A stretch of DNA of 64,000 nt from the IMG/VR virus record IMGVR_UViG_3300029258_002750, positions 62,001 through 126,000 of that record. One strand, written 5' to 3'. A model generated the notes under the pieces. The model did no database searches, had not been told where the DNA came from, and was given only the letters and a program-made list of their open reading frames with translations. Positions 1,058 to 31,724 of this stretch are shown in pieces. Every line of letters starts with the position of its first letter. Positions within the stretch are counted from its first letter, which is position 1. Position numbers and translations under genes: made by a program.

Positions 1058-1305
1058 GATGCCCTCGTTGCAAGCACCACGGCTCGAAGGTGACGAAGAC
1101 GACGCGCCCGATCGATGAGGGCATGTTCGAGTTCGGCACCCTGAAGAAGCGCGAGCGCCGGTGCGACGAGTGCAAGGGCCGGTTCTTTACCTACGAGATC
1201 CATGAGGATGCGTTTCGTAGAATGCTCACCCTTACTGAGGGTAAGCCTGTCCGCCGGTCGCTCCGAACGGGGGGCACGCCGAAGTACCGCAAGTCGCACG
1301 TGTAG
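1054..1305 (+). CDS. NrdR-like N-terminal zinc ribbon protein (no ATP-cone)
   Basis: MRCPRC...SKV...RERRCDECKGRFFTYE matches the NrdR Zn-ribbon pattern; only 83 aa. Confidence 0.65.
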   Translation: MRCPRCKHHGSKVTKTTRPIDEGMFEFGTLKKRERRCDECKGRFFTYEIHEDAFRRMLTLTEGKPVRRSLRTGGTPKYRKSHV

Positions 1306-1312
1306 GGGCAGC

Positions 1313-7300: not shown

Positions 7301-7573
7301 CTCGCTGAGGCGACGCTGGTGGAGATCCTCGGTGCGCACAGTTCGACGGCGGAGCTGATGGTCGAGGGTGGACTGGACGTCTTCGAGTACGCGATGTTCT
7401 ACAAGGACGATGAGCCGGGGAAGCTGTGCGCCGCGCTGGCCGAGGCTGGGATCAAGAAGATCGGGATGCCGAAGAGGCCGTGCAAGCAGGTCATCAAGAA
7501 GAGCATCACCAAGAGCATGGTGAACAAGCTTCTCGACAAGAGCGCTGACGCGAAGGACTGGGCGACCGCATGA
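1313..7573 (+). CDS. Giant (~2,090 aa) multidomain protein with atypical PI3/PI4-kinase/HipA-like domain; probable virion-associated polyvalent protein
   Basis: Kinase motifs FLFK, GEAAA, DKDDHGGN and GIDHG at about 4380-4750; start MNWATLIE at 1313 preferred over the track start 1202, which lies inside the upstream gene. Confidence 0.7.
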   Translation: MNWATLIEVECDKDIKIKDPTPKPEVQASPIILGRVTAAIERGRQRVDAQAAKLAKAKAKVGKAKTDKAKHKAEVSAACEALRVKAREADLEFSLNRWKNLEVMAKENLAKEKETRANLIAKGKPTDHVDETIAKIEAWLHFGGSASSHGQDHLANHGNEDFKPGPMLGISYNYGKSKLLGPDGNEFDPISCFETEKEKAKTDAVMTALAPEPSLEPATEPVVAGPKSVDDLSASETAKLKADLKTAFLTATSKGNFQWTPGEVFEKAGVIPPPAGTLSVSVAEQHASALYYAVRDEATVKSLDDLDIEEATKLVSAAFKAVSDQMKADVAAGGTFKKIATIKALRAASVAALGDKRLNLKVAKTFVDQAVEKWYSVPKPYNAYTPEDQAKIKAKAKSLAIKKAFVVAGVPQVPDVATLIKQQLSADGLGISSAAAMTLSAATIDANTNKAFGALPADKQQAILAVAQKASDKGQSVVGALQQAEIAHLDSASMKEVADKVAAKADEPGFLKAIEKHLKDIPGHDIVPFQPEAVISHIDQFGEKPFIALMSEYHIPKVKSTPLEGLIKTKAIGVVSSRWSPEKIAKIVQDNWDWMYGEHKAKPSKEVAISSISSLFSPLPSPGVTKAGGWPEAIKALTDKHFTVWVGDVPWPPWSEKWDQEHKNLASKEEIDAFTDEVMADPQFLSPGVIPSGTALHAKVKAWAADHLDGDTNAIVDALLAKSAKATIDTSSEEELGAASISINATETGDTEPKPLPTTPALPTVSGKTKVTKISKAHHLTGEQKKLLATLVASAIGSGAPFSKTGKLKSQLGGVAGTIAKQFKDAHLAVGTKLAIGKPLVLETLKKGLTGIKHSDWMSYQTYKALPDEAIAQALTTSQLNALQSMISECFLQETHQKKKGGGYYGGPFENKKQKQYFNELISKCEAVASAPVELEAVAGPGGEVHGSSLSVVELFGMSKPDLDEYAGLGPVAGTTMAPAIGKGWTSSSSDLDDSGGSEGSTKKFLSATLDGKQHTGAGKAPAQFLFKHDGYRALGEAAANRTQALLGLGGVGTDGYVMSRGGKTGFMQFFRVTKNLRRRYGHHSKPWLGLPGSGMAGSPEDERKRLAQGLQLALVSNWLVDDKDDHGGNYTFDENDQVTGIDHGQSCKFFDSGGTLLSHWDWSTGKIANKDSKATLESNKGWPKRMLMDWAAGADLGPDKTEIPLLALTDPAFEKMIQRAEGIPDDVYDKMWRPYAEGADAAKSRDGEQRLARYSHNPKDRTVEGFIDGMQQRRKTIRKQVADLFSMLAKKRAQALAAHGDTRPLPEIEAEVREQLGLDRFAAGGGAITDKQADKMSPSAEEIAAGAEAPGWDESKLPESSHMPTSETIAKWGVKGYDMSVGGDAIKGGAVTFRQLGEVPIAQFMLDGPARATLEARLPGFGGTGPQPPPKPADPAIPTFKEPPVPSFSQSPESLATTALTGDDPHNFTGIALKGLAGDRLTKIEKYVNKWRDGKLSPPKGSKYWVRGLEASRKMKTDADPIVAAAGAHYEKELLKFGAEGGPDGFTFADPATVPEEERLIKPFEPTEEQKAAQEAAKANVEAAHKKAVADAKVAHDKQVEKIKADHEKALANWQTAMKKFEEEQGPTSTLTIAKKMAGVMQPGNAKHHAADNKTASMGADWDGSWTKWYGAPGNHQASWEIDLTDVVSQLGAVATGEKDSRFKIVYSPGTQSSGKSGKHTGLDGTTFVQFPKGSTTEQNKAMLKKAFEVLGIDARPASAEDHELNYVRKMAWLLGVEGASGTAATDDARWHVVEPSGGTRKERTDFWLKKLKSHLGYDPRHAPELDDYGRPKTVPGSHGKVIMKEGPDGGPVPNPYYQPIAAHSGGQVSHRRPDFTDEEMVHMMKAGRQVFTQHSGAARKSKILQGMFLSTRDRHLSGIEKQLGASESGDLASGGGMAAFLYNRETDRLHQKGNVKTQHPVRMVVHPAILLRTNNFSAAGDTFGSKKSGYRHKTLAEATLVEILGAHSSTAELMVEGGLDVFEYAMFYKDDEPGKLCAALAEAGIKKIGMPKRPCKQVIKKSITKSMVNKLLDKSADAKDWATA

Positions 7574-8307
7574 AGCTGGCCGATCTTCCCGAGCTGCTGC
7601 ACACGGGCAAGTTCTCCCTGATCCGCGCGTACCCGGAGATCGGGCGGGAGGATGAGTTGCTCGGCAACGTGTTCGATATCCTCGTCAAAAGGCGCGATGT
7701 CGTGGTGCTCGCGAGCCCAACCGCCGGGTCCGGCGAGCCGTGCCGGTCATACGGCTTCAGCGCATTCGAGGTGATGTCGACCAACGGCGGAGCGCTCGTG
7801 ACCGAGGCCATCGACTGGCCTGTGACCACCTGGCGGTTGCGGAAGCTCGAATCGCCCGAGGACATCGAGCTGTGGGACAGGGAGCACGACGTTTACGATG
7901 ATGTCGAGGATGAGGTCTTGGAAGCGGCCAAGGAGGTCTTCGCTGACCTGGCGGCCAGGCCCGCGCCGCCCGAGCCCTCCCAGCTCTCGGCGTTCGACTA
8001 CGTCCGATGGAGCGTGCTGACCGAGGACGGGTGGACGCCCGCCGGTGCTGTGGCCGTCAAGTCCGACCAGAGCGGGCTGGCTGTCGACAGTTTTGGTGGT
8101 TCCGAGGCGGATGCGCACTTCTGGGAGACCCGCTACACGTTCGTTCCCGAGGGTTTCCTGCGAGACATCAACCAGGCATCCGGCCGGGATGAGATGTTCT
8201 CGGAGCCCACATCGATCAAGGCTGCTTCGCTAGAGGAGGCGCTGGAGCGCGCCAAGTACCAGATCGCGAAGGAGCACTACGAGCAGACAGGAAGGAGTCT
8301 CTTCTGA
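7570..8307 (+). CDS. Hypothetical acidic protein
   Basis: ATGA overlap with upstream gene; codon usage like neighbours; no recognised motif. Confidence 0.6.
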   Translation: MKLADLPELLHTGKFSLIRAYPEIGREDELLGNVFDILVKRRDVVVLASPTAGSGEPCRSYGFSAFEVMSTNGGALVTEAIDWPVTTWRLRKLESPEDIELWDREHDVYDDVEDEVLEAAKEVFADLAARPAPPEPSQLSAFDYVRWSVLTEDGWTPAGAVAVKSDQSGLAVDSFGGSEADAHFWETRYTFVPEGFLRDINQASGRDEMFSEPTSIKAASLEEALERAKYQIAKEHYEQTGRSLF

Positions 8308-9254
8308 TGGACGAGAAGCAACTGACCGACGCCGTGGCGACCCTCGCCAGTTCGTCCGCGTTCCGGCACGGGGACGCCAGCACGTTCTCCGTGACGTTCC
8401 TCCGACACGTGGCGGAGCTGCCGGGTCCAGCCGACCCCAAGAAGTACCTCCAGGTCATCAAGAACAAGCTCGGGCTCATCGTGGGCGAGGACGACAGCGT
8501 TGCGGTCGTTTGCCCCGGCAACGGTGGTCTGGTAGCCGAGGTGCTCCTGGCCGGAGCCGAGCAGGCTGTCGCGATCGAGCCGCGTGTCCGCTTCCACCAG
8601 GCGATCGATCGGGTGTGCACCCTTCTGCGGGAGACCCACGACCGGGTCGATGTCAAGACCTACCTCGGCTGGCCGAGCCCGAAGTCCAGCGTCGGCCCGT
8701 TCGATGTGATCCTCTGGCCCGAGGGGCTCGAGGAGTGCCAGGACCCCGCCGGTTCCCTCGAGAAGCTGCTCAAGTGCCTCCGGCCAGACGGGATCCTGTG
8801 TGTCGAGGTCGCCCACGGCGAGCACACCAAGACCGAGCCGCCGCTCAACGCGTTCCGGCCGACCGAGGGCACGTGGGCCGAGCTGCTGGATCAGCTGGGC
8901 ACCGAGTCCGGGATGCAGACGGACGGTCGCGCTCAGGGCCGGGTGCTCTACCGGATCGGCGGGTCGGCGAAGCTGACCGCGAAGAAGCTGACCCCAAAGC
9001 CGAAGCCTGTGCCTCCGCCTGCTCCGGCTCCCAAGGCCGCGCCCAAGCCTCCGCCTCCGCCAGCGAAGCCGCCTGCGCCGAAGCCGACTCCGCCCAGGCC
9101 CGAGCCGAAGCCCGAGCCGAAGCCCGAGCCGAAGGTCGAGCCGAAGGTCGCCAAGAAGAAGGTCACCAAGAAGAAGACGTCGAGCCGGATCAAGAAGGAG
9201 GCCGCGCCGCCGCCTCCGCCGCCCGCCGACAAGCCGAAGGACGAGAACGGGTAG
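8307..9254 (+). CDS. Class I SAM-methyltransferase-like fold protein with Pro/Lys-rich tail
   Basis: DSVAVVCPGNGG...LAGAEQAVAIEP resembles motifs I/II; FDVIL and LRPDGILCVE resemble later strands; C-terminal PKP/EPKP repeats. Confidence 0.5.
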   Translation: MDEKQLTDAVATLASSSAFRHGDASTFSVTFLRHVAELPGPADPKKYLQVIKNKLGLIVGEDDSVAVVCPGNGGLVAEVLLAGAEQAVAIEPRVRFHQAIDRVCTLLRETHDRVDVKTYLGWPSPKSSVGPFDVILWPEGLEECQDPAGSLEKLLKCLRPDGILCVEVAHGEHTKTEPPLNAFRPTEGTWAELLDQLGTESGMQTDGRAQGRVLYRIGGSAKLTAKKLTPKPKPVPPPAPAPKAAPKPPPPPAKPPAPKPTPPRPEPKPEPKPEPKVEPKVAKKKVTKKKTSSRIKKEAAPPPPPPADKPKDENG

Positions 9255-9314
9255 CGCATACCGCGATTAGGCTCAAGTAGTTAGAATCCACGGTCAGTAG
9301 CGGAGGTCGCGCCT

Positions 9315-9674
9315 GTGTCGAAGACCGTCAAGATCCAAGCCCAGTTCCAGGTGATCGACGCTGACGGCACCCAGGCCATCAACCGGGTCACCCGGGACGA
9401 GGTCACCATCGAGGAGGGCACAGGAGTCTTCCCGGAGAAGATCCCGGCCACCACGGTCGATCATCCGGTCCAGTTCTCCGGGGTCACCAACGGCAAGCGC
9501 GTCTTCCTCCGGTCGAACCAGGAGGTCACGCTCAAGATCAACAACCTCGGGGACATCGGCTTCCCGTTCGGTCCTGGCGATGGCTACCTCACCAGCTACA
9601 CCGGGATCACCGCGCTCTACGTCACGACTGGCGGGAGCGAGACCGAGTTCGAGGCCGTGGTCACCGGCGACTGA
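9315..9674 (+). CDS. Small beta-rich putative virion structural protein
   Basis: GGAGG RBS before GTG; alternating hydrophobic pattern; TAGAAT element upstream near 9282. Confidence 0.5.
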   Translation: MSKTVKIQAQFQVIDADGTQAINRVTRDEVTIEEGTGVFPEKIPATTVDHPVQFSGVTNGKRVFLRSNQEVTLKINNLGDIGFPFGPGDGYLTSYTGITALYVTTGGSETEFEAVVTGD

Positions 9675-9689
9675 GCGAGGAGATAGAGC

Positions 9690-10067
9690 ATGGCTCACCA
9701 GCACCACTTCAGCGTCAGGACCAGCGATTGGCCGCTGATCTCGATCAACGACGAGCTGATGATCGTGCACCGCAACCAGATGGCCATCAACGCGGTGCTC
9801 TACATCGGCGCGCACGAGGAATCCACGGTCGAGATCCGGTCGGCGGCCGATCGGGAGGCCGTGGAGACAGCAACCATTCCGGCCGTAGGCGTGTCAGCGC
9901 TGACCCTGCCCGCCGGTGGCCTCACCAAGTTCGACCTTCCCGGCGGTGGCACTACGCCAATCGATCAGGTCACGAAGATCTCCCTCACCCAGGGGAGCGT
10001 CTTCGTGCACATCTCGTCGCCGGGCGAGTTCTCGACGTACCTGAAGCAAGTGGACTCGGGCATCTAG
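9690..10067 (+). CDS. Small beta-rich putative virion structural protein
   Basis: GAGGAG RBS; composition like upstream gene. Confidence 0.5.
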   Translation: MAHQHHFSVRTSDWPLISINDELMIVHRNQMAINAVLYIGAHEESTVEIRSAADREAVETATIPAVGVSALTLPAGGLTKFDLPGGGTTPIDQVTKISLTQGSVFVHISSPGEFSTYLKQVDSGI

Positions 10068-10086
10068 TCACTAGGGCCTCCCATAC

Positions 10087-10389
10087 ATGATGGAGGAAGC
10101 GATGAGCAACTTCGATAAGCTGGCTGGCATCGATGAGGGCGTGACCCTCACGCGTCGCCCGCTCAAGACCCTCGACGAGGCCGGTGGCGGCAAGAAGGTC
10201 ACGACCGCCGCGACGACCGACTACGGTGACAAGGCGCCGCCCACCAAGCTGGGCACTCCCAACAGCGCCTATCGGCCGATGCCGAAGTCGCCGATCGGGA
10301 CTGCGCCCGCGTTCCCCGTCAAGGCGCGCCAGCTCCGCACCGGGAAGACCCCGTCGCCGCGCCAGCCGATCCCCGTGCGGAAGGAGTAG
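10087..10389 (+). CDS. Small basic protein with GIDE and RRPLKTLDE putative cleavage motifs
   Basis: ORF in + strand head cluster; motif shared with other ORFs; true start may be the downstream ATG (MSNF). Confidence 0.55.
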   Translation: MMEEAMSNFDKLAGIDEGVTLTRRPLKTLDEAGGGKKVTTAATTDYGDKAPPTKLGTPNSAYRPMPKSPIGTAPAFPVKARQLRTGKTPSPRQPIPVRKE

Positions 10390-10425
10390 CGCCGCTCCTC
10401 CCAACCGCGTCTGGAGGTCGCGCTA

Positions 10426-10767
10426 GTGGGCTATCTGTCTGACAACCTGGCTCCGGGTCGGTCCGTTGCGGACTGCCCGGAGCTTTACCCGTATGCGATG
10501 GTGGTCGAGTACTCTCGCAACGACCCGTTCTTCGCGCCCGGCCCGGTCGATCAGCTCTCGTTAGCCATCCGCGAGGCTCTCCCCGATGTGGAGGTATGGC
10601 AGCGTTCCATCGTTCGCCCCGACGAGAACCGCGTGAAGTTCCGTTTTCGCTCCGAGGGCGAGCGCACCCAGGGGAGCAACGCCCTCACCTCCGTCGATCC
10701 GTCGATCTCGATCCGCCGGATCGTGTTCCAGAACCCGCCCGATCGAGCGAGACGAGGAATCCCATGA
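10426..10767 (+). CDS. Hypothetical protein
   Basis: GGAGG RBS, GTG start, ATGA overlap with next gene. Confidence 0.55.
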   Translation: MGYLSDNLAPGRSVADCPELYPYAMVVEYSRNDPFFAPGPVDQLSLAIREALPDVEVWQRSIVRPDENRVKFRFRSEGERTQGSNALTSVDPSISIRRIVFQNPPDRARRGIP

Positions 10768-12275
10768 GCGAGCCGTCCATGACCACGCTCCCGCCGCAGA
10801 TGCTCAAGAACGCGAAGAAGTGGGCGAAGATCAGCGGCAAGAAGCTGTACGTCTACTGGAGCCCGGCGATGGGCCGCCCGATGTTCGCCGAGGGGCCGCC
10901 CAGCGATCCCAAGCGGTTCAAGGTGCTGGCGACCGTCTCCCCGGACGGTACCGTCAAGAAGATGCACGGCAAGAAGGCGACGGCCGTGGCCGAGGCCGAC
11001 GACGCGCTCTTCGACAACCTGGTTGACCTGTCGCGCGGCGCGTTCTCCGGCTACCAGGGGTCGTTAGCCGAGGGTTCGACGAAGCACGGCCAGTCGATGT
11101 CGTCTGGCTTCTCTCGCGACGCCAAGCTGATGGCGCCTGGCACCCGCGAGCTGGTGCTCAAGAGCCGCATGACCGAGATCGAGGCGTTTGCCGAGGACCG
11201 GGGCTACGACCCTGCGCTCGTGTTCGCCGTGGCCGAGGTCGCAATGCGGATGGGCCGCGTGCCCGACCTGCGCCAGTACGGCTTCGCGGGCGAGGATGCG
11301 AAGGCCGTCCGCCACTTCGTCGCGGGCGACATCCTCAACATCGCGGTCGAGGACGTCCAGCGGCGACGGGCGCCCGGCTGTGCCTACGGCTCGGCTGGTG
11401 CGATCCCAGCTGACCTGGCCGAGGACCATCTGGAGGAGTCAACCCACGAGCGCCAGCTCGGCCTCCACCCGAACAGCGACGGCTCGGGGTTCACTGCCCT
11501 GACCCACTCGGCCAGCAAGACCTTCAAGAGCCGGGGAGGCGCGATCCGCTGGCTCAAGAGGCGCGGCTACGACGAGAAGGGCGGCCGGATCAAGCAGGAG
11601 GACGAGGACTGGTCCGAGATCGAGGACATCTGCCAGGCAACCGCGCTCCGCGCGCCCAGCGCCGCCCACGCGCTGGCCGACTCGCTCTCCGGCGAGCTGT
11701 CCGAGGACCGGGTGCACCGCAACGCGGCTGGTCCTGCGATGGAGGCTGGCAGTCTGGTCGAGGACGCCCTCTCCGAGAGCCTGCAAGACAAGATCGGCCA
11801 GCACGGCAAGGAGATCAGCAAGGACAAGCTCAACGCGCTCGGGTCGCTGTGGCTCTACGACGGGAAGGTCTGGTACCTGCGCGGGCCAAGCGCCAAGTTC
11901 GTGAACTGGGGGCCGCCCGAGCAGTTCCTCAAGCACCGCTACCGGAAGAGCCAGTTCCCCGGCGTGGATCCCAAGAAGCTCAAGGCGATGGCGGAGAGCG
12001 TCGGGCTGGACGAGGTCTCTCCTCCCGGCTGGTCCGGCACCGTCAAGGCGATGAAGGGCGAGGGCGGCAAGAAGCTCAAGAAGTACGCCGACGAGCCCGA
12101 GAGCGGCGACAAGAAGGACATCGACAACCCGTGGGCGCTCGCCTGGTACATGCACAAGAAGGGCGCGAAGCCGCACTACAAGCCGGAGCCCGGCAAGCCC
12201 AAGTACAAGGCGCCGAAGACCGAGGAGACCGGCATCTCGGCGGCCGTTGCCGAGTTCCGCGCGATGGAGGACTGA
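10764..12275 (+). CDS. Putative internal head protein with multiple L-x-E sites
   Basis: Start MSEPSM at ATGA overlap; LAE, LEE, LSE, LVE and LDE sites separate distinct segments. Confidence 0.6.
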   Translation: MSEPSMTTLPPQMLKNAKKWAKISGKKLYVYWSPAMGRPMFAEGPPSDPKRFKVLATVSPDGTVKKMHGKKATAVAEADDALFDNLVDLSRGAFSGYQGSLAEGSTKHGQSMSSGFSRDAKLMAPGTRELVLKSRMTEIEAFAEDRGYDPALVFAVAEVAMRMGRVPDLRQYGFAGEDAKAVRHFVAGDILNIAVEDVQRRRAPGCAYGSAGAIPADLAEDHLEESTHERQLGLHPNSDGSGFTALTHSASKTFKSRGGAIRWLKRRGYDEKGGRIKQEDEDWSEIEDICQATALRAPSAAHALADSLSGELSEDRVHRNAAGPAMEAGSLVEDALSESLQDKIGQHGKEISKDKLNALGSLWLYDGKVWYLRGPSAKFVNWGPPEQFLKHRYRKSQFPGVDPKKLKAMAESVGLDEVSPPGWSGTVKAMKGEGGKKLKKYADEPESGDKKDIDNPWALAWYMHKKGAKPHYKPEPGKPKYKAPKTEETGISAAVAEFRAMED

Positions 12276-12276
12276 C

Positions 12277-14418
12277 GTGACGATTCGACAGCAGCAGCAG
12301 GAGGACTGGTACAAGGGCTGGCCCAGGAACATCAGCTTGTTGCCCGTCGAGAAGGGCGCGAAGAAGGGCTCGTTCTCCAACATCCGCATCTCGTCCACGA
12401 GCCCATCTGACATCAAGATGATCGTCGGTACCTCCAAGCGGAAGCCGTTCGGTGGGAAGATCAAGATCAAGGACAAGCAGCGATCCTCGGTGATCGTGCA
12501 CAGCTACGACGATGGCATGTTGAAGGCGTTCCTCAACGCCATCATTCGGGCTGACTACGGCCAGAAGATGACGTTCGAGCGGGTAGCCGTCCAAGAGGGA
12601 GAGGAAGACGTGAGCGATCTCGACGAGGCCACGATGGGCGGCGCAGCGATGGGCGCGCACATGCAGCTCGGCTCGGCGTTCATGCAGCGTCCGCGCTCCA
12701 TGATCCCCTACAACCAGTGGGCGGAGACTGACACCGACGATCTCTCATCCGTCACGACCGGACCGCTGGTTTCAGCGTTCGAGCCGTTCAGCGTCCGCGA
12801 CATGATGCGGATCGACGAGTACAACCTCGACGATCTGGAGAAGGCCGAGCGCGGGCAGCTTCCGTTCGGCTTCCACCACGATCCACCGGCGAAGCAGAAG
12901 AGCTTTCTGCGGCACTGGATGAAGCCGTCGAACTTCAAGAAGCTCAACAAGGAGCAGCAGGAGACCTACAAGAAGGAAGCCATCCGCCAAGGCGTGATCA
13001 AGTCGGATGTGCAGCAGGCCGGTGAGCCGATCGACGAGATGGAGTACGCCAAGTTCTACAAGCCGAAGGCGCCGAAGAAGTCGAAGTGGGGTGATCCGGG
13101 CGTGGATTGGGCATGGGGCGGAAAGACCGCATTCCATCCCAAGGACGACCAGTTGGCGGTCAAGAACGCGCCCAAGATGCTGAAGTCACTCAGCGAGAAG
13201 CAGAAGGCAGTCCTCAAGAAGAAGTTCCCAGGGTACTGGAAGGCCATGAACGCCGCCGCGAAGGGGATGAAGGCGTATCGCGACTACATCGCCTCGATCA
13301 GCGATCCCAACACGGGAATGCACGGCAAAGGGGCTGATGCTCGCAAGGAGTTCAACCAGGCTGAGACGTTCTGGGGAAACGCCAGAGTCGGCGAGGTTCG
13401 TTGGGGCGGCCGGATGATGGAGGAGAAGACCCGCAAGCAGCGCTCGATCGAGAACAAGAAGCGCTTCGCCAAGCTCTCCCCGGAGCAGAAGGCCGCGACC
13501 AAGGGCGACAAGCCGTTCCATCCTGACGTGAAGGAGGACGACGATCTCGACGAGTCGCGTGACTCATACGGCCAGGCGCCGTCCCTCGGCGAGATCTTCA
13601 CGCCCGAGCGAGCCGCTCGAGCCGGTGACTTCCTCTCCAAGTGGATGAAGAAGGGCAGGGAGGCCCAAGCCAAGAAGGCCAAGAAGGCCAAGAAGCACGA
13701 GGGGCTGGACGAGGAGAAGACGCGCAAGCAGCGATCGGCCGAGAACAAGGCCAGGTTCGCCAAGATGTCGCCGAAGGAGAAGGCGGCCACGAAGGGTGAC
13801 GCCCCGTTCCACCCGGACGTGAAGGAAGACGAGGAGCTGGTCGAGGGGTTCAATCCGACCAAGTTCGCGAAGGGCCTGGCGATGCACATCATGACCGGCC
13901 CGATGAAGGGGAAGCTCCCCTCGAGCAAGGTCATCTGGCTCAGTTCGGTCGCCGCCGCGTTCGTGAAGAAGAACGAGGCGATGATCCGCAAGCAGCTCGA
14001 GGCCGGAACGCTCGACCCCAAGGCGTTCATGGCGTCGTTCAAGAAGTACGCCGAGAACGCGGCCAAGAAGGCCGAGGAGGCGCCGGTCAGCGCTGCCGTG
14101 CTTCGCGAGGCGCGGCCGAACCCCAAGACGCACCCGAAGATGAAGGGCAACATCAACAGCCCGGCCTTCAAGGCGCACGTCGGCGACTCCGACGACAGCG
14201 AGAAGCCCTACCACAAGGGCAAGGGCATCCAGAAGGAAGGCGAGGAGAAGTGGATCGCGGGCGCGATCAAGCGTCCTGGTGCGCTGAAGAAGAAGATCGA
14301 GAAGCGCACCAAGAAGGGGACGATCCCGGCGGATGAGCTGAAGAAGGCCGCGAAGAAGCCCGGCCGCACTGGTCAGCAGGCACGACTGGCGCAGACGCTC
14401 AGGAAGCTCAACAAGTGA
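12277..14418 (+). CDS. Lys-rich putative internal head polyprotein with internal 45-aa duplication
   Basis: GTG start after GGAGG; repeated LDE/LVE/LRE sites; duplicated EEKTRKQRS...PFHPDVKE unit. Confidence 0.6.
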   Translation: MTIRQQQQEDWYKGWPRNISLLPVEKGAKKGSFSNIRISSTSPSDIKMIVGTSKRKPFGGKIKIKDKQRSSVIVHSYDDGMLKAFLNAIIRADYGQKMTFERVAVQEGEEDVSDLDEATMGGAAMGAHMQLGSAFMQRPRSMIPYNQWAETDTDDLSSVTTGPLVSAFEPFSVRDMMRIDEYNLDDLEKAERGQLPFGFHHDPPAKQKSFLRHWMKPSNFKKLNKEQQETYKKEAIRQGVIKSDVQQAGEPIDEMEYAKFYKPKAPKKSKWGDPGVDWAWGGKTAFHPKDDQLAVKNAPKMLKSLSEKQKAVLKKKFPGYWKAMNAAAKGMKAYRDYIASISDPNTGMHGKGADARKEFNQAETFWGNARVGEVRWGGRMMEEKTRKQRSIENKKRFAKLSPEQKAATKGDKPFHPDVKEDDDLDESRDSYGQAPSLGEIFTPERAARAGDFLSKWMKKGREAQAKKAKKAKKHEGLDEEKTRKQRSAENKARFAKMSPKEKAATKGDAPFHPDVKEDEELVEGFNPTKFAKGLAMHIMTGPMKGKLPSSKVIWLSSVAAAFVKKNEAMIRKQLEAGTLDPKAFMASFKKYAENAAKKAEEAPVSAAVLREARPNPKTHPKMKGNINSPAFKAHVGDSDDSEKPYHKGKGIQKEGEEKWIAGAIKRPGALKKKIEKRTKKGTIPADELKKAAKKPGRTGQQARLAQTLRKLNK

Positions 14419-14693
14419 CGCTGACCGAGGCGGTCCGGCGGTTCCGCGAGATGGATGAGGCCACGACCACGGCCAACATCGGCGCACGTACGACCGGCGG
14501 CCTCCCGTTCTACGGCCGTCGCGGGCTGGCAGTCATCGAGCGCGAGCGCAAGCGGCGCATGAAGCGCCAGCGACGGAGCAAGTGCAAGGGCTACGACCCC
14601 AAGTGCCGTGACAAGGAGTGGGAGGTGCCCGCGCCGGTCGGCGGAGTCGCGATCCTGCGGCGCAGCTCGGTGACGAGTCCATCGCCAAGTTGA
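14415..14693 (+). CDS. Small basic protein (MTLTEAVRRFREMDE)
   Basis: GTGA overlap; N-terminus resembles MNLSDAIRRFRGEDE inside the 14741 ORF. Confidence 0.5.
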   Translation: MTLTEAVRRFREMDEATTTANIGARTTGGLPFYGRRGLAVIERERKRRMKRQRRSKCKGYDPKCRDKEWEVPAPVGGVAILRRSSVTSPSPS

Positions 14694-14740
14694 TCGACCC
14701 GCAGCTGGAGAGCGGGTAAGATGTTGAGCCGAGGCCACCT

Positions 14741-16957
14741 ATGAGCGATTCGATCGACAAGCTGCTCCACATGGCGATGGCGGGTCCGTTCGCCGACTGC
14801 TCGCTGAACGAGCCGCTGACCGAGGACAGCCAGGCGGAGTGGAATCGGATCTTCGCCTCGCTGAAGCCCAAGGAGACGCTCCTCGTTGCCATGACCAGCA
14901 TCATGGGGCGGCACCCCAAGATGGACGGCAAGTTCCATCCGTGGAAGGTCGGTCGCCGGTCGCACAGCAAGCGGTCGGGGATGACGTCCGTGACGCTCCT
15001 ACCGATGGAGGGGAAGCCGAAGAAGGGTGCCCGGCTCCATCGCATCTCCCTCTACACCTTCAAGGACGGGGACGTCAACGCCGGTTGGGGCGACATGGCC
15101 GTGATGCTCAAGGGCCTCAAGCGCGCGCCCAAGACCGAGGGCGTGGACGACCACCTGACTCCCGAGGAGCGGATGCTCCTGGGGCTCGATCGCGGCGCCA
15201 GCTCCGGCCCCTGGTTCGGTGACGACGCCCCGACCGGCCCCCGGCCGCTGATGGAGGGCGAGACCTCCCACTACTTCCCCCAGCCGATGACGTTAGCCGA
15301 GCACCGCTCGGACGATCACCCGATCGTCGAGGAGGCGCTCGACTGCGAGATGATCCAGTCGGTCTCGTTCTCAGCTGGGCCGGGCGACCCCCGCGAGCCG
15401 GAGTACGAGGGCGTCCCGTTCAAGCTCGAGGAGGACGAGGAGCTGGTCGAGGCCGCCGGTCCCAGGAAGGGCGAGCGGTACACTGTCAAGGGCATCGACG
15501 GTGTGATCAGCGGGCCGTGGGAGGTCTGGATGGACAGCTCCTCGCCCAAGCAGAACATCCTGATGACGCGCCTCGGTTCCAAGGGCAAGAAGAAGGGCAA
15601 GGCGCTCTCGATCTACGTGCCGAGCAATCAGTTCGGCATCTCGCTCAAGCAGTGGCAGCAGTTCACCAAGAGCGGGCACATCAAGCCGTTGCGCGAGGAC
15701 GAGCTGGCCGAGCTGGCCGAGGCGGTCACCAAGGTCACCTACCTGGGCAAGAAGGATCAGGTCTCCTACAAGGACGCGCTGGCTGAGATCGACAAGACCT
15801 GGAAGCACCAGGGCAACTGGAACATGCCCGCGATCCAGTTCATTCGGCGGACGGCCAAACAGGAGCATCACGCGGCCATCGCGTTCGAGGCCGGTCAGCT
15901 TCTCCAGGTCATCAAGCACAGCCCGCTTGGCATCCAGAAGCAGAAGGCCATGTACGATCGCCTCCGCAAAGCGGTCTCCAAGCACAAGGAGGAGAGCGCG
16001 GAGGACCGGGCGAACCTGGCCGAGATGGAGGCCGGTGACATCGACGGCGCCATGAAGGAGATCCGAAAGAAGGTCATCAAGGGCGCCAAGCCTACGCGCG
16101 CCCGTCGACTCGCCGGATGTCTACGCGCGCTGCGCACGGGCGGAATCACGGTCTCTGGCCAGTCCCAGACCGACCTGAACCCGGTGCCCAAGGTCGAGCG
16201 CAACAAGGAAGACCAGCCGAAGGACGACACGCCCGGCGAGGTGGACGAGTCGCTTGATGAGACCACCGGGCCGCCGGATGCCGATGACCCGAAGGCCCGT
16301 CAGTTCGGAATGCCGTCCCCGAATTGGCAGACGAAGCGCCCGCCGCGCGCAAAGCGGGGCAGGCGCAAGAAGAAGTACGAAGACACGGAGGATGTCATGA
16401 ACCTGAGTGATGCGATCCGGCGCTTCCGGGGCGAGGACGAGGAGCCCGCGCCGAAGCCCGAGCCGAAGCCCGAGCCGCAGGCGGAATCCCACGCGCGCGG
16501 TGCCACCCCCGAGTACGGCGAGTCGTTCAACGAGCTGCGCGAGAAGGGCATGGCCCTCGACGACTTCGGGTCGTTCGGCGACGCGAGCGACGTGCAGTTC
16601 GCCGAGGCCATGCTGACCGACGATCCGACCTTGACCGGGATGGATCGTCGGCTGGCCCAGCTCGAGGCCAACATCCCCGTGAAGGGCGGGAAGTCCAAGA
16701 GCAGGTTCCGCCAGCCCTACAAGGGGCCGGGCAAGGGCGTGCACGGGCCTGCGTCGACTCCCGCTGATCCCGAGGCGAAGGCGGCGGCCACGCGCAGTAC
16801 CGCTGGCGTGTCGGGTCCGGGCTACACGCCTGATGGCCGCGAGGAGGTGGACGTCCGCACCGAGCGGCGCGAGCCCAAGAGCGCGCGCGACCTCGACCTC
16901 TTCGCCGAGGGCATGGAGTACCCGGACGATCTGATCAAGCGCGACAAGCGGCCGTAG
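14741..16957 (+). CDS. Putative internal head polyprotein with multiple L-x-E sites
   Basis: 738-aa ORF; LTE, LME, LAE, LVE, LRE and LDE sites flank basic segments. Confidence 0.6.
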   Translation: MSDSIDKLLHMAMAGPFADCSLNEPLTEDSQAEWNRIFASLKPKETLLVAMTSIMGRHPKMDGKFHPWKVGRRSHSKRSGMTSVTLLPMEGKPKKGARLHRISLYTFKDGDVNAGWGDMAVMLKGLKRAPKTEGVDDHLTPEERMLLGLDRGASSGPWFGDDAPTGPRPLMEGETSHYFPQPMTLAEHRSDDHPIVEEALDCEMIQSVSFSAGPGDPREPEYEGVPFKLEEDEELVEAAGPRKGERYTVKGIDGVISGPWEVWMDSSSPKQNILMTRLGSKGKKKGKALSIYVPSNQFGISLKQWQQFTKSGHIKPLREDELAELAEAVTKVTYLGKKDQVSYKDALAEIDKTWKHQGNWNMPAIQFIRRTAKQEHHAAIAFEAGQLLQVIKHSPLGIQKQKAMYDRLRKAVSKHKEESAEDRANLAEMEAGDIDGAMKEIRKKVIKGAKPTRARRLAGCLRALRTGGITVSGQSQTDLNPVPKVERNKEDQPKDDTPGEVDESLDETTGPPDADDPKARQFGMPSPNWQTKRPPRAKRGRRKKKYEDTEDVMNLSDAIRRFRGEDEEPAPKPEPKPEPQAESHARGATPEYGESFNELREKGMALDDFGSFGDASDVQFAEAMLTDDPTLTGMDRRLAQLEANIPVKGGKSKSRFRQPYKGPGKGVHGPASTPADPEAKAAATRSTAGVSGPGYTPDGREEVDVRTERREPKSARDLDLFAEGMEYPDDLIKRDKRP

Positions 16958-16973
16958 CTCGCGGGAGGCTACC

Positions 16974-17477
16974 GTGGGCCTGAAGGATGTGGCCGAGGAT
17001 CTCGCTGGCTTCCTCGTGGAGGCCGACCCCGACCCGGGGCCGGGTCCGCCTGTACTCACCGAGGAGCAGGTCGACGAGGCCGCAACGGCCGTACTGGACT
17101 ACGTGCTCAGTCGGATGGAGAGCGACGATACGCCCGCCACGCTGGGCGAGGCGCTCGTCATCGGCGCGCGGGCCGTCAGCGTGGACCTCGATCAGGGTGA
17201 CGACCGGATCGCTCAGGCGGCCGTCTCCCGACTCGAGGACATCGCGCGGGCAGCTCGGGTGTCGATCGAGGAACAGGAAGAGCCGATCGAGGAGGCGACC
17301 GCTCCCGAGACGAGCGCGATCATCGACCTGCTCCGCAAGAAGAAGGGCGCGAAGCTGCGCGAGGTCGCCAAGGCAATCGGCAGCGATGTGAGGGCGGCAG
17401 CCAAGGCGCTCAAGAAGCTCCAGGCGCAGGGTCGGCTCGACTACAACCTCAAGACCGGATACTCGGTGGTGCAGTGA
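16974..17477 (+). CDS. Protein with C-terminal winged helix-turn-helix
   Basis: IIDLLRKKKGAKLREVAKAIGSDVRAAAKALKKLQAQGRLDY is a wHTH pattern. Confidence 0.55.
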   Translation: MGLKDVAEDLAGFLVEADPDPGPGPPVLTEEQVDEAATAVLDYVLSRMESDDTPATLGEALVIGARAVSVDLDQGDDRIAQAAVSRLEDIARAARVSIEEQEEPIEEATAPETSAIIDLLRKKKGAKLREVAKAIGSDVRAAAKALKKLQAQGRLDYNLKTGYSVVQ

Positions 17478-18577
17478 GCCTCTACGAGCGGGTGCTAGGC
17501 GAGGCCGCCGCGACGGCGGCAGCTGGTTTCGCCGCTCTCTCCTCCGATGAGAAGCGGGCGCTCGCTCGTGCGTGGGACGCGTGGCGGAACAAGCCATCCT
17601 GGGAGAAGCGTGGCCAGAACGCCTGGTACGACTGTCCGCGTGTGAAGGCGGTGCTAGGGCTCTCGCCGGGCGACAAGGTCCCACGCTTCATCAAGCGGCT
17701 CAAGCGGAAGGATCTGAGCGAGTCGAAGCAGGGGGGCGCGGCAGCGTCCAAGAAGCTCAGTGGGACGTGGGGGCATCCGCGCCGACACGGCAAGAAGGCG
17801 GCCAGCAAGAAGCGCCGTCAGCAAGGCAAGCGGATCGACGAGGGCAAGGCCGCGTCCAGCTCGCAGATCAGCTACGCCCAGCACCTCGCCAAGCAGCAGA
17901 AGCTCAGAAGCCCGACTGCCGACGAGATCGCGGCGATGGACGACGTGACCATCAGCAAGCTGATCGACGGCCTCAAGAAGAAGCGCGGCGAGCCGGTGTT
18001 CTACGGCAACGGCAAGTTCAAGGGCTGGGTCAAGAAGGGTGAGCTGTGGCCCAAGGGCAAGAAGGAGTCGCTCGGCGAGGCCGCCTGGGGCATGTTCACC
18101 GGCGGGGCGGCGCCGCTGGATGTTCCCTACCACGTGGGCGGAGACTGGAAGGAAGGCGCGGCGCAATTGCTCCGTCGGGAGCTTGCGAAGCTCAAGGGGA
18201 TGGAGCGCGCGCGCCTTGCCCTCCTCGCTGACGCGCTAGAACGCCGGGATCTCAAGGCGGCCAAGAGGTTCTACAAGAAGCTGTCGAAGGCCGCCCGGAA
18301 CCGCTACGTCACGGTGGCGGCCCGCGAGAAGCTCTCAGAGTCGCTCGAGGAGTACGGCGGCATCGGCGGCCGGATCGCCGGTGGTCGTCATCCCTACCGC
18401 GTGCCTCCGTCGAACACGATCCCGCCTGCCAACACGATCGTCACCCGCAAGGACATGACGCCCGAGCTGCTGGCGAAGCGGCAGCGCGAGTTGGAACAGC
18501 GGGCCGAGACGCGAGAGCGGATGCGTCAGCTGGCGATCGAAGGCAAGCGCCGACCACTGAAGACTCTCAGTTCGTAG
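17474..18577 (+). CDS. Basic protein with N-terminal MSLYERVLGE motif (putative capsid-targeted protein)
   Basis: GTGA overlap; LSE, IDE, LGE and LEE sites; ends RRPLKTLSS. Confidence 0.6.
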   Translation: MSLYERVLGEAAATAAAGFAALSSDEKRALARAWDAWRNKPSWEKRGQNAWYDCPRVKAVLGLSPGDKVPRFIKRLKRKDLSESKQGGAAASKKLSGTWGHPRRHGKKAASKKRRQQGKRIDEGKAASSSQISYAQHLAKQQKLRSPTADEIAAMDDVTISKLIDGLKKKRGEPVFYGNGKFKGWVKKGELWPKGKKESLGEAAWGMFTGGAAPLDVPYHVGGDWKEGAAQLLRRELAKLKGMERARLALLADALERRDLKAAKRFYKKLSKAARNRYVTVAAREKLSESLEEYGGIGGRIAGGRHPYRVPPSNTIPPANTIVTRKDMTPELLAKRQRELEQRAETRERMRQLAIEGKRRPLKTLSS

Positions 18578-19915: not shown

Positions 19916-22669
19916 ATGTCGTCACCCGTAAGTGCTGTTGGTGATAAGACTTCTGCCGTACAGCTCAAGCCCTACTTCACCAAGACCGATGATCCCTTCG
20001 AGGGGATCGAGTGGGATCGTCGCCGAGCTGTGATCCAGAACGCGGACGGGACCGTCGTGTTCGAGATGGAGGACGTGGAGGTTCCCGCGAGCTGGAGCCA
20101 GCGCGCGACCGACATTGTCGTCTCGAAGTACTTCCGCAAGGGAGGCGTGCCCAAGACGAAGACCGAGACATCGGTTCGCCAGGTGGTGCACCGGATCGCC
20201 GATGCACTCTCATCGGCCGGGCAGCACCAGGGCTACTTCACACCGGAGACCGGCCGCATCTTCTACCGCGAGCTGGCGCACCTCCTCGTGAACCAGGTCG
20301 GCTGCTTCAACTCGCCGGTCCTGTTCAACGTCGGACTGGCCGAGAGCTACAACATCACCGGCGAGTCAGCTGGCAACTGGGCCTGGGTCGAATCGCTGGG
20401 CGAGGCGGTCCAGACGACCGACGGTTACTCGCGCGCTCAGGCTTCGGCCTGCTTCATCCGCTCAGTCGAGGACGACCTCATGTCAATCGCCGAGGGCATC
20501 AAGACCGAGATGCGCCTCTTCAAATACGGAAGCGGCACTGGAACCAATTTCTCCCGCCTGCGCGCGATCGGGGAACCGCTCTCCAGCGGCGGATCTTCGT
20601 CGGGCGTGATGAGCTTCTTGCGCGCGTACGATACGGCGGCCGGATCGGTCAAATCGGGCGGCGCAACGCGCCGGGCTGCGAAGATGGTAATCCTCGACGC
20701 CGACCACCCGGACGTCGAGCGGTTCATCGACTGGAAGGTGCAAGAGGAGAGGAAGGCGAAGGCGCTCATTGCTGCCGGGTTCTCCGGCGGCATCGACGGC
20801 GAGGCATACAGGACCGTCTCTGGGCAGAACGCGAACAACACGGTGCGGGTAACCGATGGCTTCATGCGCGCGACCGAGAAGGGCGATGAGTGGTCAACAC
20901 GGTTCCGCACGTCGGGCGAGGTTGCCACGAAGCTCGACGCGAAGAAGCTGCTCCGCAAGATCGCGTCGGCCGTCTGGGAGTGCGGCGACCCTGGCATCCA
21001 GTTCCACGACACGATCAACAAGTGGAATCCGACGCCGAACGCTGGGAAGATCAGGGCCTCGAACCCGTGCGGCGAGTTCATGTTCGTCGATGAGTCGGCC
21101 TGCAATCTGGCCAGCCTGAACCTGGTCAAGTTCCTCCATTCCGACGGCACGTTCGACATCGAGAGCTTCCGCCAGGCGTGCAGGGTTTTCATCCTCGCCC
21201 AGGAGATCATCGTCGACTACGCGAGCTACCCGACGAAGAAGATCGCCGAGAACAGCCACCGGCTCCGGCCCCTCGGCCTGGGCTACGCGAACCTCGGCGG
21301 TCTGCTCATGCGGATGGGGCTCCCTTACGACAGCGACGAGGGCCGTGCCGTCTGCTCGGCCATCACCGCGCTGATGAGCGGAACCGCCTGGGAGATGTCG
21401 GCCGAGATCGCGATGCGCGTCGGGCCGTTCACCGGCTTCGCGTTCAACAGGGACTCCATGCTCCGCGTCGGCCAGATGCACAAGGACGCGCTCGACGGCA
21501 TCCCGCAGAGTCCGATCCGTGACGAAGCGACACTCGCCTGGGAGCGCGCGCTTGACCTCGGTGGGCAGCACGGCTTCCGCAATGCGCAGTTGTCCTTGCT
21601 CGCCCCGACCGGGACCGTCTCGTTCCTGATGGACTGCGACACGACGGGGATCGAGCCGACCTACGCGCTGATCGCGCACAAGAAGCTCGCCGGTGGTGGG
21701 ACGATGAAGATCACCAGTGGCGCTGTGATCGAGGCTCTCCATGCGCTCGGCTACGAGCCGGACGCGCAGCGCGAGGTGGCCGAGTACATCGACGACAACG
21801 GGAAGATCGAGGGCGCGCCGCACGTCCGGCCGGAGCACTACCCGGTCTTCTCGTGTGCGACCGGCGAGGGCGCGATCACCCCGAAGGGCCACCTGGGCAT
21901 GATGGCCGCCGCGCAGCCGTTCCTCTGCGGTGGGATCTCCAAGACGTGCAACCTGCCGAAGAATGCGACCGTCGAGCAGATCGAGCAGCTCTACCGCGAC
22001 GCCTGGGAGATGGGGCTCAAGGCCGTGGCCGTGTTCCGTGCGGGCAGCAAGGGCTGCCAGGTGCTCACGTCGGGCCGGAAGAAGCGCCAGCCGGATGAGC
22101 CTGCGGCCGAGCGCGCTCAGGACGAGCAGGTCCGCGCGCGCCGTCGTCGCCACCGGCTACCGAAGCGCCGGACTGGCTTCACCCAGGAGGCAACGATCGG
22201 CGGGCACAAGGTCTACCTGCGGACCGGCGATTACGAGGACGGTTCCCTGGGCGAGATCTTCATCGACATGCACAAGGAGGGCGCGACGCTCCGCTCGCTC
22301 CTCAACACGGTGGCGATTTCCATCTCGTTGGGACTCCAACACGGCGTGCCGCTCGAGGAGTACGTGGACGCCTTTACGTGGACGCGCTTCCTTCCGGCCG
22401 GGCCGGTTGTCGGCCACGACCACGTCAAGACGGCGACCTCGATCATCGACTACATCTTCAAGGTGCTTGCGGTCGAGTACCTCGGCCGACACGACCTCGC
22501 CCACGTGCACCCGCTCAAGAGCAAAGGTGACGGCAGCGTAGAGCCGGTGCCGCCGACGAACGGTGCCTCCCGTGAGGCCCAGATCTGTCCGCGCTGTGGG
22601 GGCCTTACGCAGACGAGCGGAACGTGCAGCGTTTGCGTCTCGTGCGGAGAGACCACAGGCTGCTCCTAA
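19916..22669 (+). CDS. nrdJ: Class II (adenosylcobalamin-dependent) ribonucleotide reductase with C-terminal TSCPD domain and Zn ribbon
   Basis: FNSPV, SACF, GSGTG, RRAAKM, SNPCGE, APTGTVS..DCDTTGIEP, GGISKTCN; C-terminal CPRC...CSVCVSCGETTGCS. Confidence 0.95.
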   Translation: MSSPVSAVGDKTSAVQLKPYFTKTDDPFEGIEWDRRRAVIQNADGTVVFEMEDVEVPASWSQRATDIVVSKYFRKGGVPKTKTETSVRQVVHRIADALSSAGQHQGYFTPETGRIFYRELAHLLVNQVGCFNSPVLFNVGLAESYNITGESAGNWAWVESLGEAVQTTDGYSRAQASACFIRSVEDDLMSIAEGIKTEMRLFKYGSGTGTNFSRLRAIGEPLSSGGSSSGVMSFLRAYDTAAGSVKSGGATRRAAKMVILDADHPDVERFIDWKVQEERKAKALIAAGFSGGIDGEAYRTVSGQNANNTVRVTDGFMRATEKGDEWSTRFRTSGEVATKLDAKKLLRKIASAVWECGDPGIQFHDTINKWNPTPNAGKIRASNPCGEFMFVDESACNLASLNLVKFLHSDGTFDIESFRQACRVFILAQEIIVDYASYPTKKIAENSHRLRPLGLGYANLGGLLMRMGLPYDSDEGRAVCSAITALMSGTAWEMSAEIAMRVGPFTGFAFNRDSMLRVGQMHKDALDGIPQSPIRDEATLAWERALDLGGQHGFRNAQLSLLAPTGTVSFLMDCDTTGIEPTYALIAHKKLAGGGTMKITSGAVIEALHALGYEPDAQREVAEYIDDNGKIEGAPHVRPEHYPVFSCATGEGAITPKGHLGMMAAAQPFLCGGISKTCNLPKNATVEQIEQLYRDAWEMGLKAVAVFRAGSKGCQVLTSGRKKRQPDEPAAERAQDEQVRARRRRHRLPKRRTGFTQEATIGGHKVYLRTGDYEDGSLGEIFIDMHKEGATLRSLLNTVAISISLGLQHGVPLEEYVDAFTWTRFLPAGPVVGHDHVKTATSIIDYIFKVLAVEYLGRHDLAHVHPLKSKGDGSVEPVPPTNGASREAQICPRCGGLTQTSGTCSVCVSCGETTGCS

Positions 22670-31665: not shown

Positions 31666-31724
31666 GCCTCTACGATCGGGTGCTCGCGGAGGAGGACCGG
31701 GGGGCTGTTCGCACGCTCTACGCG
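31662..31724 (+). pseudogene. Original 5' end (MSLYDRVLAEEDRGAVRTLY) of the HAD gene, split off by HNH insertion
   Basis: EDRG..VRTLY is duplicated at the start of the 32297 ORF on the other side of the HNH gene. Confidence 0.6.

Follow-up and report, generated by a model that had tools for sequence, protein, structure and literature searches.

How many proteins does a gene yield when its product looks like a string of small modules, each set off from the next by what resembles a protease site? The question is raised by four large open reading frames (ORFs), here called ORFs A to D, in a 64,000-nucleotide stretch of IMG/VR virus record IMGVR_UViG_3300029258_002750 (bases 62001-126000 of the record; this whole stretch is called the window below, and positions refer to it unless the genome is named). 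A sequence-only reading of the window had described the four as polyproteins of basic peptides separated by L-x-E sites. Our analysis suggests, with a probability of roughly 0.5 for the whole chain, that ORFs A-D are polyproteins which the prohead protease would cut at L-x-E into internal, DNA-associated head proteins.

The virus record comprises 275,101 bp, has direct terminal repeats and is rated 100% complete, and the GC content is ~65%. Gene calling by third-position GC (GC3) gave 333 genes; ORFs A-D are real genes with GC3 of 0.86-0.91. Together with two small ORFs of 92 and 167 amino acids (aa) they form a tight co-oriented row. The four large ORFs are:

10764-12275, plus strand: ORF A, 503 aa, at least five modules, GC3 0.89
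12277-14418, plus strand: ORF B, 713 aa, net charge ~+48, ~9 modules; its GTG start is backed by homolog P0005
14741-16957, plus strand: ORF C, 738 aa, putative polyprotein; conserved blocks alternate with unrelated inserts in homologs P0002-P0004
17474-18577, plus strand: ORF D, 367 aa, net charge +41, ~5 modules

The Leu-x-Glu motif and the modules between its copies

All 15 example sites quoted in the sequence-only reading are present, and the enrichment that it had offered as a check is borne out. L-x-E occurs 33 times in the four ORFs (2,331 residues), whereas shuffling within each protein gives 11.8 (z = 6.7) and not one of 2000 shuffles attains the observed count, and [LIM]xE[SAGDET] is found 26 times where 10.2 are expected. 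The density of [LIM]xE followed by a small or acidic residue is 1.12 per 100 aa, compared with 0.49 in the other 329 called genes, and ORFs A, B, C and D are all within the top 11 when the genome is ranked by L-x-E excess.

We scanned all twenty residues at P3 with either Glu or Asp at P1. In the four ORFs, Leu was the one residue with an excess ahead of x-Glu (2.8-fold), and L-x-Asp stayed at 1.13. In the rest of the genome L-x-E and L-x-D show an equal excess of 1.22, hence helix propensity or composition does not explain the enrichment. The observed/expected ratios are 0.75 for A-x-E, 0.69 for S-x-E and 0.46 for G-x-E, and neither Ile nor Met is enriched at P3; of the L/I/M-x-E motif suggested earlier, the Leu form therefore stands and the other two do not. 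The same preference is seen in 38 homologs from other phages (19,635 aa), with 208 L-x-E observed and 102 expected (2.05-fold) and L-x-D at 0.81. T4 gp21 recognises L/I-x-E, and a site with Asp at P1 is not processed (PMC9026906); the enrichment of Glu and not Asp in the ORFs matches this behaviour.

The positions of the motif also differ in how well they are kept. Among the 25 sites that can be aligned with the relative L015, P2 differs in 12 of 25, as opposed to 5 differences in the 50 P3 and P1 positions combined (Fisher p = 7e-4), and the three aligned sites without Glu lie inside folded modules or a leader. Moreover, the repeated linkers are lineage-specific (P-V-x-A-x-x-L-R-E, F-D-K-x-R-G-F-F-V-x-E, P-W-R-E-G-F-x-x-E, E-S-V-E-L-D-E and E-G-W-E-x-L-D-E), and all of them end in hydrophobic-x-Glu. 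In every instance read (>25 homologs), Glu directly precedes the 'VSPPGW' module that closes ORF A, with a nearly always hydrophobic P3.

AlphaFold models of ORFs A and B, built with module-fragment alignments, contain confident mini-domains with linkers of low predicted local distance difference test score (pLDDT <50) between them, which for ORF B gives the appearance of beads on a string. In the model of ORF A the confident domains span aa 11-68, 121-198, 229-278, 357-412 and 417-500, the linkers between them again having pLDDT <50; all seven L-x-E sites are predicted in or at the edge of low-confidence linkers, and both M-x-E sites in helices. For ORFs A and B taken together, 9 of 14 L-x-E sites are strictly inside pLDDT <50 segments (p = 0.04), or 11 of 14 counting edges (p = 0.002). 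Structure prediction, which had also been proposed as a check, thus separates mini-domains by linkers that hold most of the L-x-E sites. Most of the sites listed earlier are linkers as claimed, while a few (MTE in A, LSE-KQ in B, MKE and LRE-KG in C) are probably within folded or conserved modules.

Lys makes up 11.2% of the four ORFs (versus 5.0%), and the net charge is strongly basic for B (+48) and D (+41) and about neutral for A (+5) and C (-2). The description as basic peptides hence holds for B, D and part of A and C, and fails for A and C as wholes.

A syntenic cluster is present in the relatives L015, L019, L021 and L024 and in the IMG/VR record behind L031, and pairwise alignments of orthologs consist of blocks of ~90% identity broken by whole inserted or replaced segments. 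The lengths in this phage and in L015 are 503 versus 732 aa for A, 713 versus 481 aa for B, 738 versus 640 aa for C, and 367 versus 495 aa for D. For instance, at the point where ORF A has a single L-A-E, the L015 ortholog A' has L-A-E and L-V-E with a module of 78 extra residues between them, and in D' an insert of 130 aa is flanked by L-A-E and L-T-E. B' starts at the point where the extra 127-aa N-terminal module of ORF B ends in D-L-D-E, and ORF B itself contains a second copy of a 44-aa module bounded by L-x-E. Among the ORF D orthologs D', P0184 and P0185, modules are shuffled, inserted or deleted exactly at L-x-E. Altogether 22 of the 34 major module edges between orthologs are within 5 aa of [LIM]xE, compared with 6.0 expected (p < 2e-4; none of 5,000 randomisations reaches it). 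As read from these alignments, the linkers are shown to be evolutionary joints, at which modules have been inserted, duplicated, swapped and exchanged with stand-alone genes. The earlier view of strings of separable modules joined by L-x-E linkers agrees both with the module edges and with the structure models.

With ORF B as query, an exhaustive HMMER search matched 354 proteins of 58 to 1,017 aa among 1.84 billion representative proteins; in these the ORF B modules occupy differing positions, and the homolog sequences indicate one module pool common to ORFs A, B and C, used in many orders. The polyproteins were found solely in uncultivated phages from sediment and seawater metagenomes, and a close-relative scan of IMG/VR with ORF C returned an identical copy only. 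A 131-aa gene of L015 consists of a leader ending in L-A-E at residue 11 and one module; from residue 14 it aligns at 49% identity (E = 5e-39) with a module inside a 421-aa polyprotein of L031, a contig that also encodes Peptidase_S77, and it matches an internal module of P0158 as well. One and the same module is thus used in two settings, following a cleavable leader in one and flanked by two junctions in the other, which is what would be expected if the two gave the same mature product.

These patterns could also be explained if the chains were never cut. ORFs A-D would then be multidomain proteins, e.g. multivalent binders of DNA or protein, and the acidic L-x-E stretches would be flexible linkers that serve as recombination joints through microhomology. 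Module shuffling at the linkers is seen directly, some linker DNA and leader DNA is conserved as cassettes, as recombination joints would be, and cleavage itself is something that we infer. However, a recombination joint needs identity of DNA, not a fixed Leu at P3 and Glu at P1 with a free P2, and the specificity for Glu and not Asp is left unexplained, as are the short N-terminal leaders that end in an L-x-E-type motif (described below). The convergence of unrelated lineages on different linkers, all ending in hydrophobic-x-E, also speaks against uncut chains, which we consider unlikely.

Leaders, the prohead protease and a proposed route into the head

If the four ORFs are to be cut by a prohead protease, their products have to enter the prohead, and here the N-termini are informative. 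The features that bear on this are:

17474-17503, plus strand: 10-residue leader M-S-L-Y-E-R-V-L-G-E of ORF D, resembling a capsid-targeting sequence (CTS), with Ala at P1'
14741-14812, plus strand: leader of ORF C, aa 1-24, ending S-L-N-E
45837-46631, plus strand: 264-aa very basic gene (K+R 68, D+E 16) with an ORF D-type leader
46641-47564, plus strand: 307-aa basic gene with a 12-residue version of the ORF D-type leader ending L-T-E
31662-31700, plus strand: copy of the leader cassette, M-S-L-Y-D-R-V-L-A-E; the downstream frame (to 32300) has a GC3 of only 0.60 and is not coding-like

The N-terminus of T4 IPII and IPIII is M-K-T-Y-Q-E-F-I-A-E, followed by Ala. The ORF D leader shares with it an equal length, Tyr4, hydrophobic residues at 7 and 8 (L/I at 8), Glu10 and Ala at P1'. 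In the T4 CTS, positions 4 and 7 matter for targeting and positions 8 and 10 for processing (PMC9026906). The ORF D leader is thus CTS-like in form, and by analogy with T4 it may have a targeting role. Leaders of the type M-S-L-Y-[DE]-R-V..L-x-E also start two L015 genes and the homologs P0184 and P0185, and a 22-nt DNA cassette encoding the leader is conserved at six gene starts in this phage and L015, with unrelated flanks. The copy at 31662 is perhaps the remnant of a gene, or else a gene that has undergone a frameshift. ORF C shares with its homologs a different, invariant N-terminus of 19 residues, with hydrophobic-x-Glu within the next ten residues; this leader is kept in four homologs in which the sequence downstream is replaced, and the polyproteins of another lineage start with M-K/T-N-P-L-G-x-R-L..x-E.

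The phage is an uncultivated T4-like jumbo phage without a close cultured relative, its capsid protein having at most ~30% identity to any among 50,697 phage records. Its head module (genome 187.8-196.2 kb) encodes a T4-type gp20 portal (PF07230), a Peptidase_S77 protease and a gp23 capsid protein (PF07068), and is followed by sheath and tape-measure genes. The premise of a T4 gp21-type protease is therefore sound: the prohead protease matches Peptidase_S77 (PF03420) with 37.1 bits against a cut-off of 27 (E = 2.9e-9) and the structure of T4 gp21 (5jbl) at E = 1.3e-5. Two internal controls agree with this. In an alignment of the capsid protein with T4 gp23, [LI]xE sites that end at aa 63 and 74 of the propeptide coincide with the place of the T4 cut behind Glu65. 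Between portal and protease lies an acidic scaffold-like protein with 15 [LIM]xE sites; D-L-D-E, a form also present in the ORFs, accounts for several of them.

The protease gene (L007:11916-14747; genome 191916-194747) is itself interrupted by an intein with Hint and LAGLIDADG homing endonuclease domains (aa 81-427), placed right after D-H-P-G-D-G-K, and the protease has a C-terminal extension of ~400 aa that is rich in [LI]xE. An HNH homing-endonuclease gene is found directly 3' of the major capsid gene (genome 196278-197429, outside the window).

The scheme that we favour starts from small modules (~40-140 aa), predicted to fold independently and mostly rich in Lys and Arg, which are strung together by short, disordered, acidic Leu-x-Glu linkers. 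These linkers would be the cleavage sites, and the cutter would be the phage's own gp21-family Peptidase_S77 prohead protease. ORF D and its two single-module paralogs would enter the prohead by means of the 10-residue CTS-like leader, and ORF C by means of its conserved 24-residue leader. Cuts after each junction Glu would take place during head maturation, and the basic fragments would stay with the packaged DNA as internal proteins and probably be ejected into the host.

Several observations weigh against this scheme. No N-terminal leader can be recognised on ORFs A and B, and this leaves the model incomplete, since it offers no explanation of how they would reach the prohead. The ORFs were called part of the head cluster in the sequence-only reading, and this proved mistaken: they are located at genome 72.8-80.6 kb, ~107 kb from the portal, protease and capsid genes, amid genes of nucleotide metabolism. 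Ile at P3, although accepted by T4 gp21 and used by the scaffold of this phage, is not enriched in the ORFs, and ORFs A and C are not net basic. Comparisons with PHROG and Pfam families give no sequence homology to T4 internal proteins, and nucleotide and protein searches of the 50,697 cultured phage records give no match except for a DUF1391 module in ORF A. The promoter evidence is ambiguous, the early-type motif being absent inside the block and present in one copy at the start of a 30-kb co-oriented block. None of the RNA sequencing runs searched contains the region, and the cutter could possibly be another protease.

The last point leads to a second alternative, in which a different Glu-specific protease, from the host or from the upstream gene cluster, would cut the chains, and the products would act unpackaged within infected cells, where they might for instance coat DNA or organise it. 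The setting of the genes among replication and nucleotide-metabolism functions, the lack of leaders in A and B, and the conserved cluster of genes without annotated function that is always upstream, including a giant protein of 1,870-2,120 aa, would fit such a role. Against it, no peptidase domain was detected in the neighbours tested, and the prohead protease is the sole Glu-specific L/I-x-E protease identifiable in the genome. Moreover, the CTS-like leader of ORF D and its paralogs points to the prohead, and the T4 internal-protein genes are likewise distant from the head genes, so that we find an unpackaged, intracellular role quite improbable.

Known systems and what cleavage would mean

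The closest known system is that of the T4 internal proteins IPI, IPII, IPIII and Alt, with their CTS and gp21; it agrees with what is seen here in leader form, cut motif and protease family. In both cases the genome is of the T4 type with gp20, gp21 and gp23, the cargo is basic and its genes are away from the head cluster. The leader is the sole part common to otherwise unrelated genes and its DNA is a conserved cassette, and the cargo is diverse and fast-changing (PMC3012670, PMC12373910). In contrast, T4 has one protein per gene with a single cut, whereas up to ~9 modules are concatenated here with internal L-x-E; ORFs A and B are leaderless, and some modules are strongly conserved (69%) as opposed to the hypervariable T4 proteins. 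No PHROG or Pfam internal-protein family is matched, and tblastn in the 50,697 phage records found only the DUF1391 module. The system would be a concatenated version of the T4 internal-protein system.

The T4 core proteins gp22, gp67 and gp68 are each cut by a gp21-type protease at several L/I-x-E sites, as the ORFs would be, and as might be the scaffold-like protein of this phage with its 15 such sites, but they are acidic scaffolds whose fragments are mostly expelled, while the ORFs here consist of folded, basic and individually conserved modules. That ORFs A-D are themselves accessory scaffold or core proteins, packaged and shredded at L-x-E with the peptides leaving before DNA entry and none injected, is the least likely alternative: T4 core proteins are indeed cut into many fragments that mostly leave the head (PMC9026906), a 275-kb genome needs a large core, and the many sites per protein recall the pattern of the scaffold. 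However, the fragments would be conserved mini-domains that fold, and those of B and D carry a strong basic charge, which recalls the DNA-associated T4 internal proteins and not acidic coiled-coil scaffolds. The head module already has a separate acidic scaffold-like gene, and a rapid turnover of cassettes is more readily understood for cargo that interacts with the host than for a structural core.

The inner-body and ejection proteins of phiKZ, 201phi2-1 and SPN3US, which gp175/gp245 process, provide a further comparison, since these are also jumbo phages with many head proteins cut after Glu by a diverged gp21 homolog (PMC9026906, PMC10052503). Some of their head proteins are cut at several sites, and a large mass of protein is ejected (PMC9026906, PMC10052503). 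The motif of phiKZ and SPN3US is however S/A/G-x-E or A-x-E, the very P3 residues that are depleted here where Leu is enriched, and the multiple cuts mainly destroy long propeptides instead of releasing a series of modules. Phage-database searches revealed no homology to the phiKZ/SPN3US inner-body families.

Polyvalent proteins (Iyer et al. 2017, PMC5512222) likewise have many domains in one chain, and are thought to be delivered with the DNA and then split into functional units; an analogy with viral polyproteins has been drawn for them. They share with the ORFs the presence of many domains on one polypeptide. Their domains are however enzymatic, an embedded zincin-like peptidase provides for self-processing, and their genes are usually beside virion genes, whereas the ORFs would be cut in trans by the prohead protease at a repeated linker. 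A Pfam scan of the four ORFs detected neither an embedded peptidase (MPTase) nor any of the hallmark conflict domains (MuF, ART, ParB, ArdC and others), and adjacent portal or virion genes are lacking, the head module being ~107 kb away and the neighbours being deoxynucleoside monophosphate (dNMP) kinase and ribonucleotide reductase (RNR).

The claim that many products arise from each gene, so that the gene count is too low, fits the comparative, structural and leader evidence, and the cleavage on which it depends is our inference. If the linkers are cut, the mature virion or injected proteins would exceed the gene count several-fold, with ~25-30 products from the four genes. Whole-ORF homology annotation would keep failing, because the evolving unit is the module. 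The T4 paradigm of targeting and gp21 cleavage, in which each protein has one leader, would be extended to a polyprotein principle that is otherwise familiar from eukaryotic RNA viruses, and a simple sequence rule (a leader, then hydrophobic-x-Glu junctions) would help to recognise, in metagenomic phages, the cargo that is packaged. Candidate DNA-associated or anti-defence factors would then include the 78-aa helical module, the 'VSPPGW' and DUF1391 modules and the basic C-terminal module that also stands alone, and the arrangement would offer a natural design for loading several payloads into T4-type capsids.

A broader proposal, which we advance tentatively and with some doubt, is that a widespread uncultivated clade of T4-related jumbo phages in sediment and seawater packages injected cargo as combinatorial polyproteins drawn from a shared module pool, the lineage-specific linkers being at once prohead-protease sites and joints for cassette exchange. 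An injected factor could then be added, duplicated or swapped by moving one bead, without a new promoter or targeting signal, and linkers and protease specificity would be expected to co-evolve.

Individual modules, neighbouring genes and promoter-like motifs

The modules and junctions that could be delimited within ORFs A and B are the following:

11064-11072, plus strand: L-A-E junction of ORF A (aa 101-103), in a low-pLDDT linker; the insert of ortholog A' is exactly here
11124-11357, plus strand: conserved helical module of ORF A (aa 121-198), pLDDT 95-98
11448-11597, plus strand: DUF1391 (PF07151) module of ORF A (aa 232-268), Pfam 47.7 bits against a cut-off of 27.3; phrog_751
12006-12014, plus strand: L-D-E junction before the last module of ORF A
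12015-12272, plus strand: C-terminal 'VSPPGW...NPWALAW' module of ORF A, ending A-V-x-x-F-R
13426-13554, plus strand: first K-T-R-K-Q-R-S module copy of ORF B, ending L-D-E; internal duplication
13714-13845, plus strand: second K-T-R-K-Q-R-S module copy of ORF B, ending L-V-E; missing from the L015 ortholog
14239-14415, plus strand: C-terminal basic module of ORF B (W-I-A-G-A-I-K...A-R-L-A-Q-T-L-R-K)

The 78-aa helical module of ORF A has a mean identity of 69% across 17 proteins of differing architecture. A Foldseek comparison of the ORF A model with the PDB gave nothing at E <= 0.001 and only lytic transglycosylase rows at E ~2, and a feature search of the ESM Atlas with the module gave no usable match. 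With VIA-align this module (11124-11357; aligned aa 124-201) superposes best on the helical domains of type III secretion system (T3SS) gatekeepers (CopN, InvE, MxiC, BopN), but the Z scores of 5.6-7.6 are below significance for helical bundles and the match was kept as a lead only; the four top rows of that comparison, at this insignificant score, all come from the one family of T3SS gatekeepers.

DUF1391 is the only Pfam match in all four ORFs; it is above the gathering threshold, covers one module only, and is elsewhere a stand-alone small prophage protein. The 'VSPPGW' module is N-terminal, internal or C-terminal in many metagenomic proteins and matches no Pfam or PHROG family. The K-T-R-K-Q-R-S module occurs singly or in tandem in P0006, P0016, P0027 and P0031. 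The C-terminal module of ORF B has >100 homologs, mostly stand-alone proteins of 58-160 aa, and weak matches to phrog_20603 and phrog_15706; an assignment to 'DUF3008' was dropped since Pfam gave no confirmation for ORF B or its stand-alone homologs.

Three small ORFs accompany the four large ones:

10087-10389, plus strand: 100-aa ORF with a leader-like ...F-D-K-L-A-G-I-D-E followed by R-R-P-L-K-T-L-D-E; syntenic in L015
14415-14693, plus strand: 92-aa basic ORF starting M-T-L-T-E-A-V-R-R-F-R-E-M-D-E, GC3 0.86; a 90-aa gene is syntenic in L015
16974-17477, plus strand: 167-aa acidic ORF with a C-terminal winged-helix-like region (weak helix-turn-helix matches) and F-L-V-E at aa 16; syntenic in L015

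Two short peptides recur in and around these genes. A-[IV]-x-x-F-R-x-x-[ED] is found in real genes of this cluster only (12243 at the C-terminus of ORF A, 14430 at the N-terminus of the 92-aa ORF and 16412 inside ORF C) and recurs at termini or junctions of the homologs P0006, P0024 and P0157; possibly the motif represents a further type of helix for targeting or recognition. R-R-P-L-K-T-[LAV] occurs seven times in the genome (window 791, 10156, 18551 and 42722, the last on the minus strand; genome 22504, 179842 and 185197), near N-termini or at the C-terminus of ORF D, often with x-E immediately after it, and in homolog P0184 a further module comes after it.

The ORF block has the dNMP kinase gene and the gene for the RNR large subunit on its 3' side. 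Its 5' side is occupied by a methyltransferase-like gene, by a number of small ORFs and by an ORF of 2,123 aa that matches no family. The RNR of relatives contains one or two inteins (L015:15420-20351, L024:16262-20305), while the copy in the window (19916-22669, 917 aa) has none. The gene order 5' of the polyproteins (window 3-10767) is conserved in all relatives, L015, L019, L021 and L024: a ~675-aa protein, which in the relatives is PF27249 MJ0330_N, comes first, followed by the giant protein of 1,870-2,120 aa and by proteins of ~240, 345 (methyltransferase-like), 120, 125, 95 and 115 aa. No function could be assigned to any member of this row.

The T4 late promoter T-A-T-A-A-A-T-A is absent, and neither of its two one-mismatch matches is relevant. 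A-G-T-T-A-G-R-A is rare (five copies on both strands; window 9279, genome 189752 and 201206) and stands 22-37 nt 5' of three features, namely the gene that comes next after the portal, an operon in the tail region, and the 119-aa gene (window 9315) that heads the row of small ORFs and polyproteins. It could be a late promoter element, but we did not use it as evidence, as its three to four instances were chosen post hoc and overlap ribosome-binding sites. Another promoter-like motif, G-G-G-T-A-G-A-A-C-G, is found 5' of many small genes (window 18600, 24259, 26232, 29334, 35475 and 39543, and ~50 more at genome 1.9-200 kb); it precedes 32 of 181 genes at 80.6-200.9 kb, compared with 0 of 60 in the tail/structural block. 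Its core G-T-A-G-A-A-C is typically exactly 13 nt before the ATG, a spacing that suggests leaderless transcripts.

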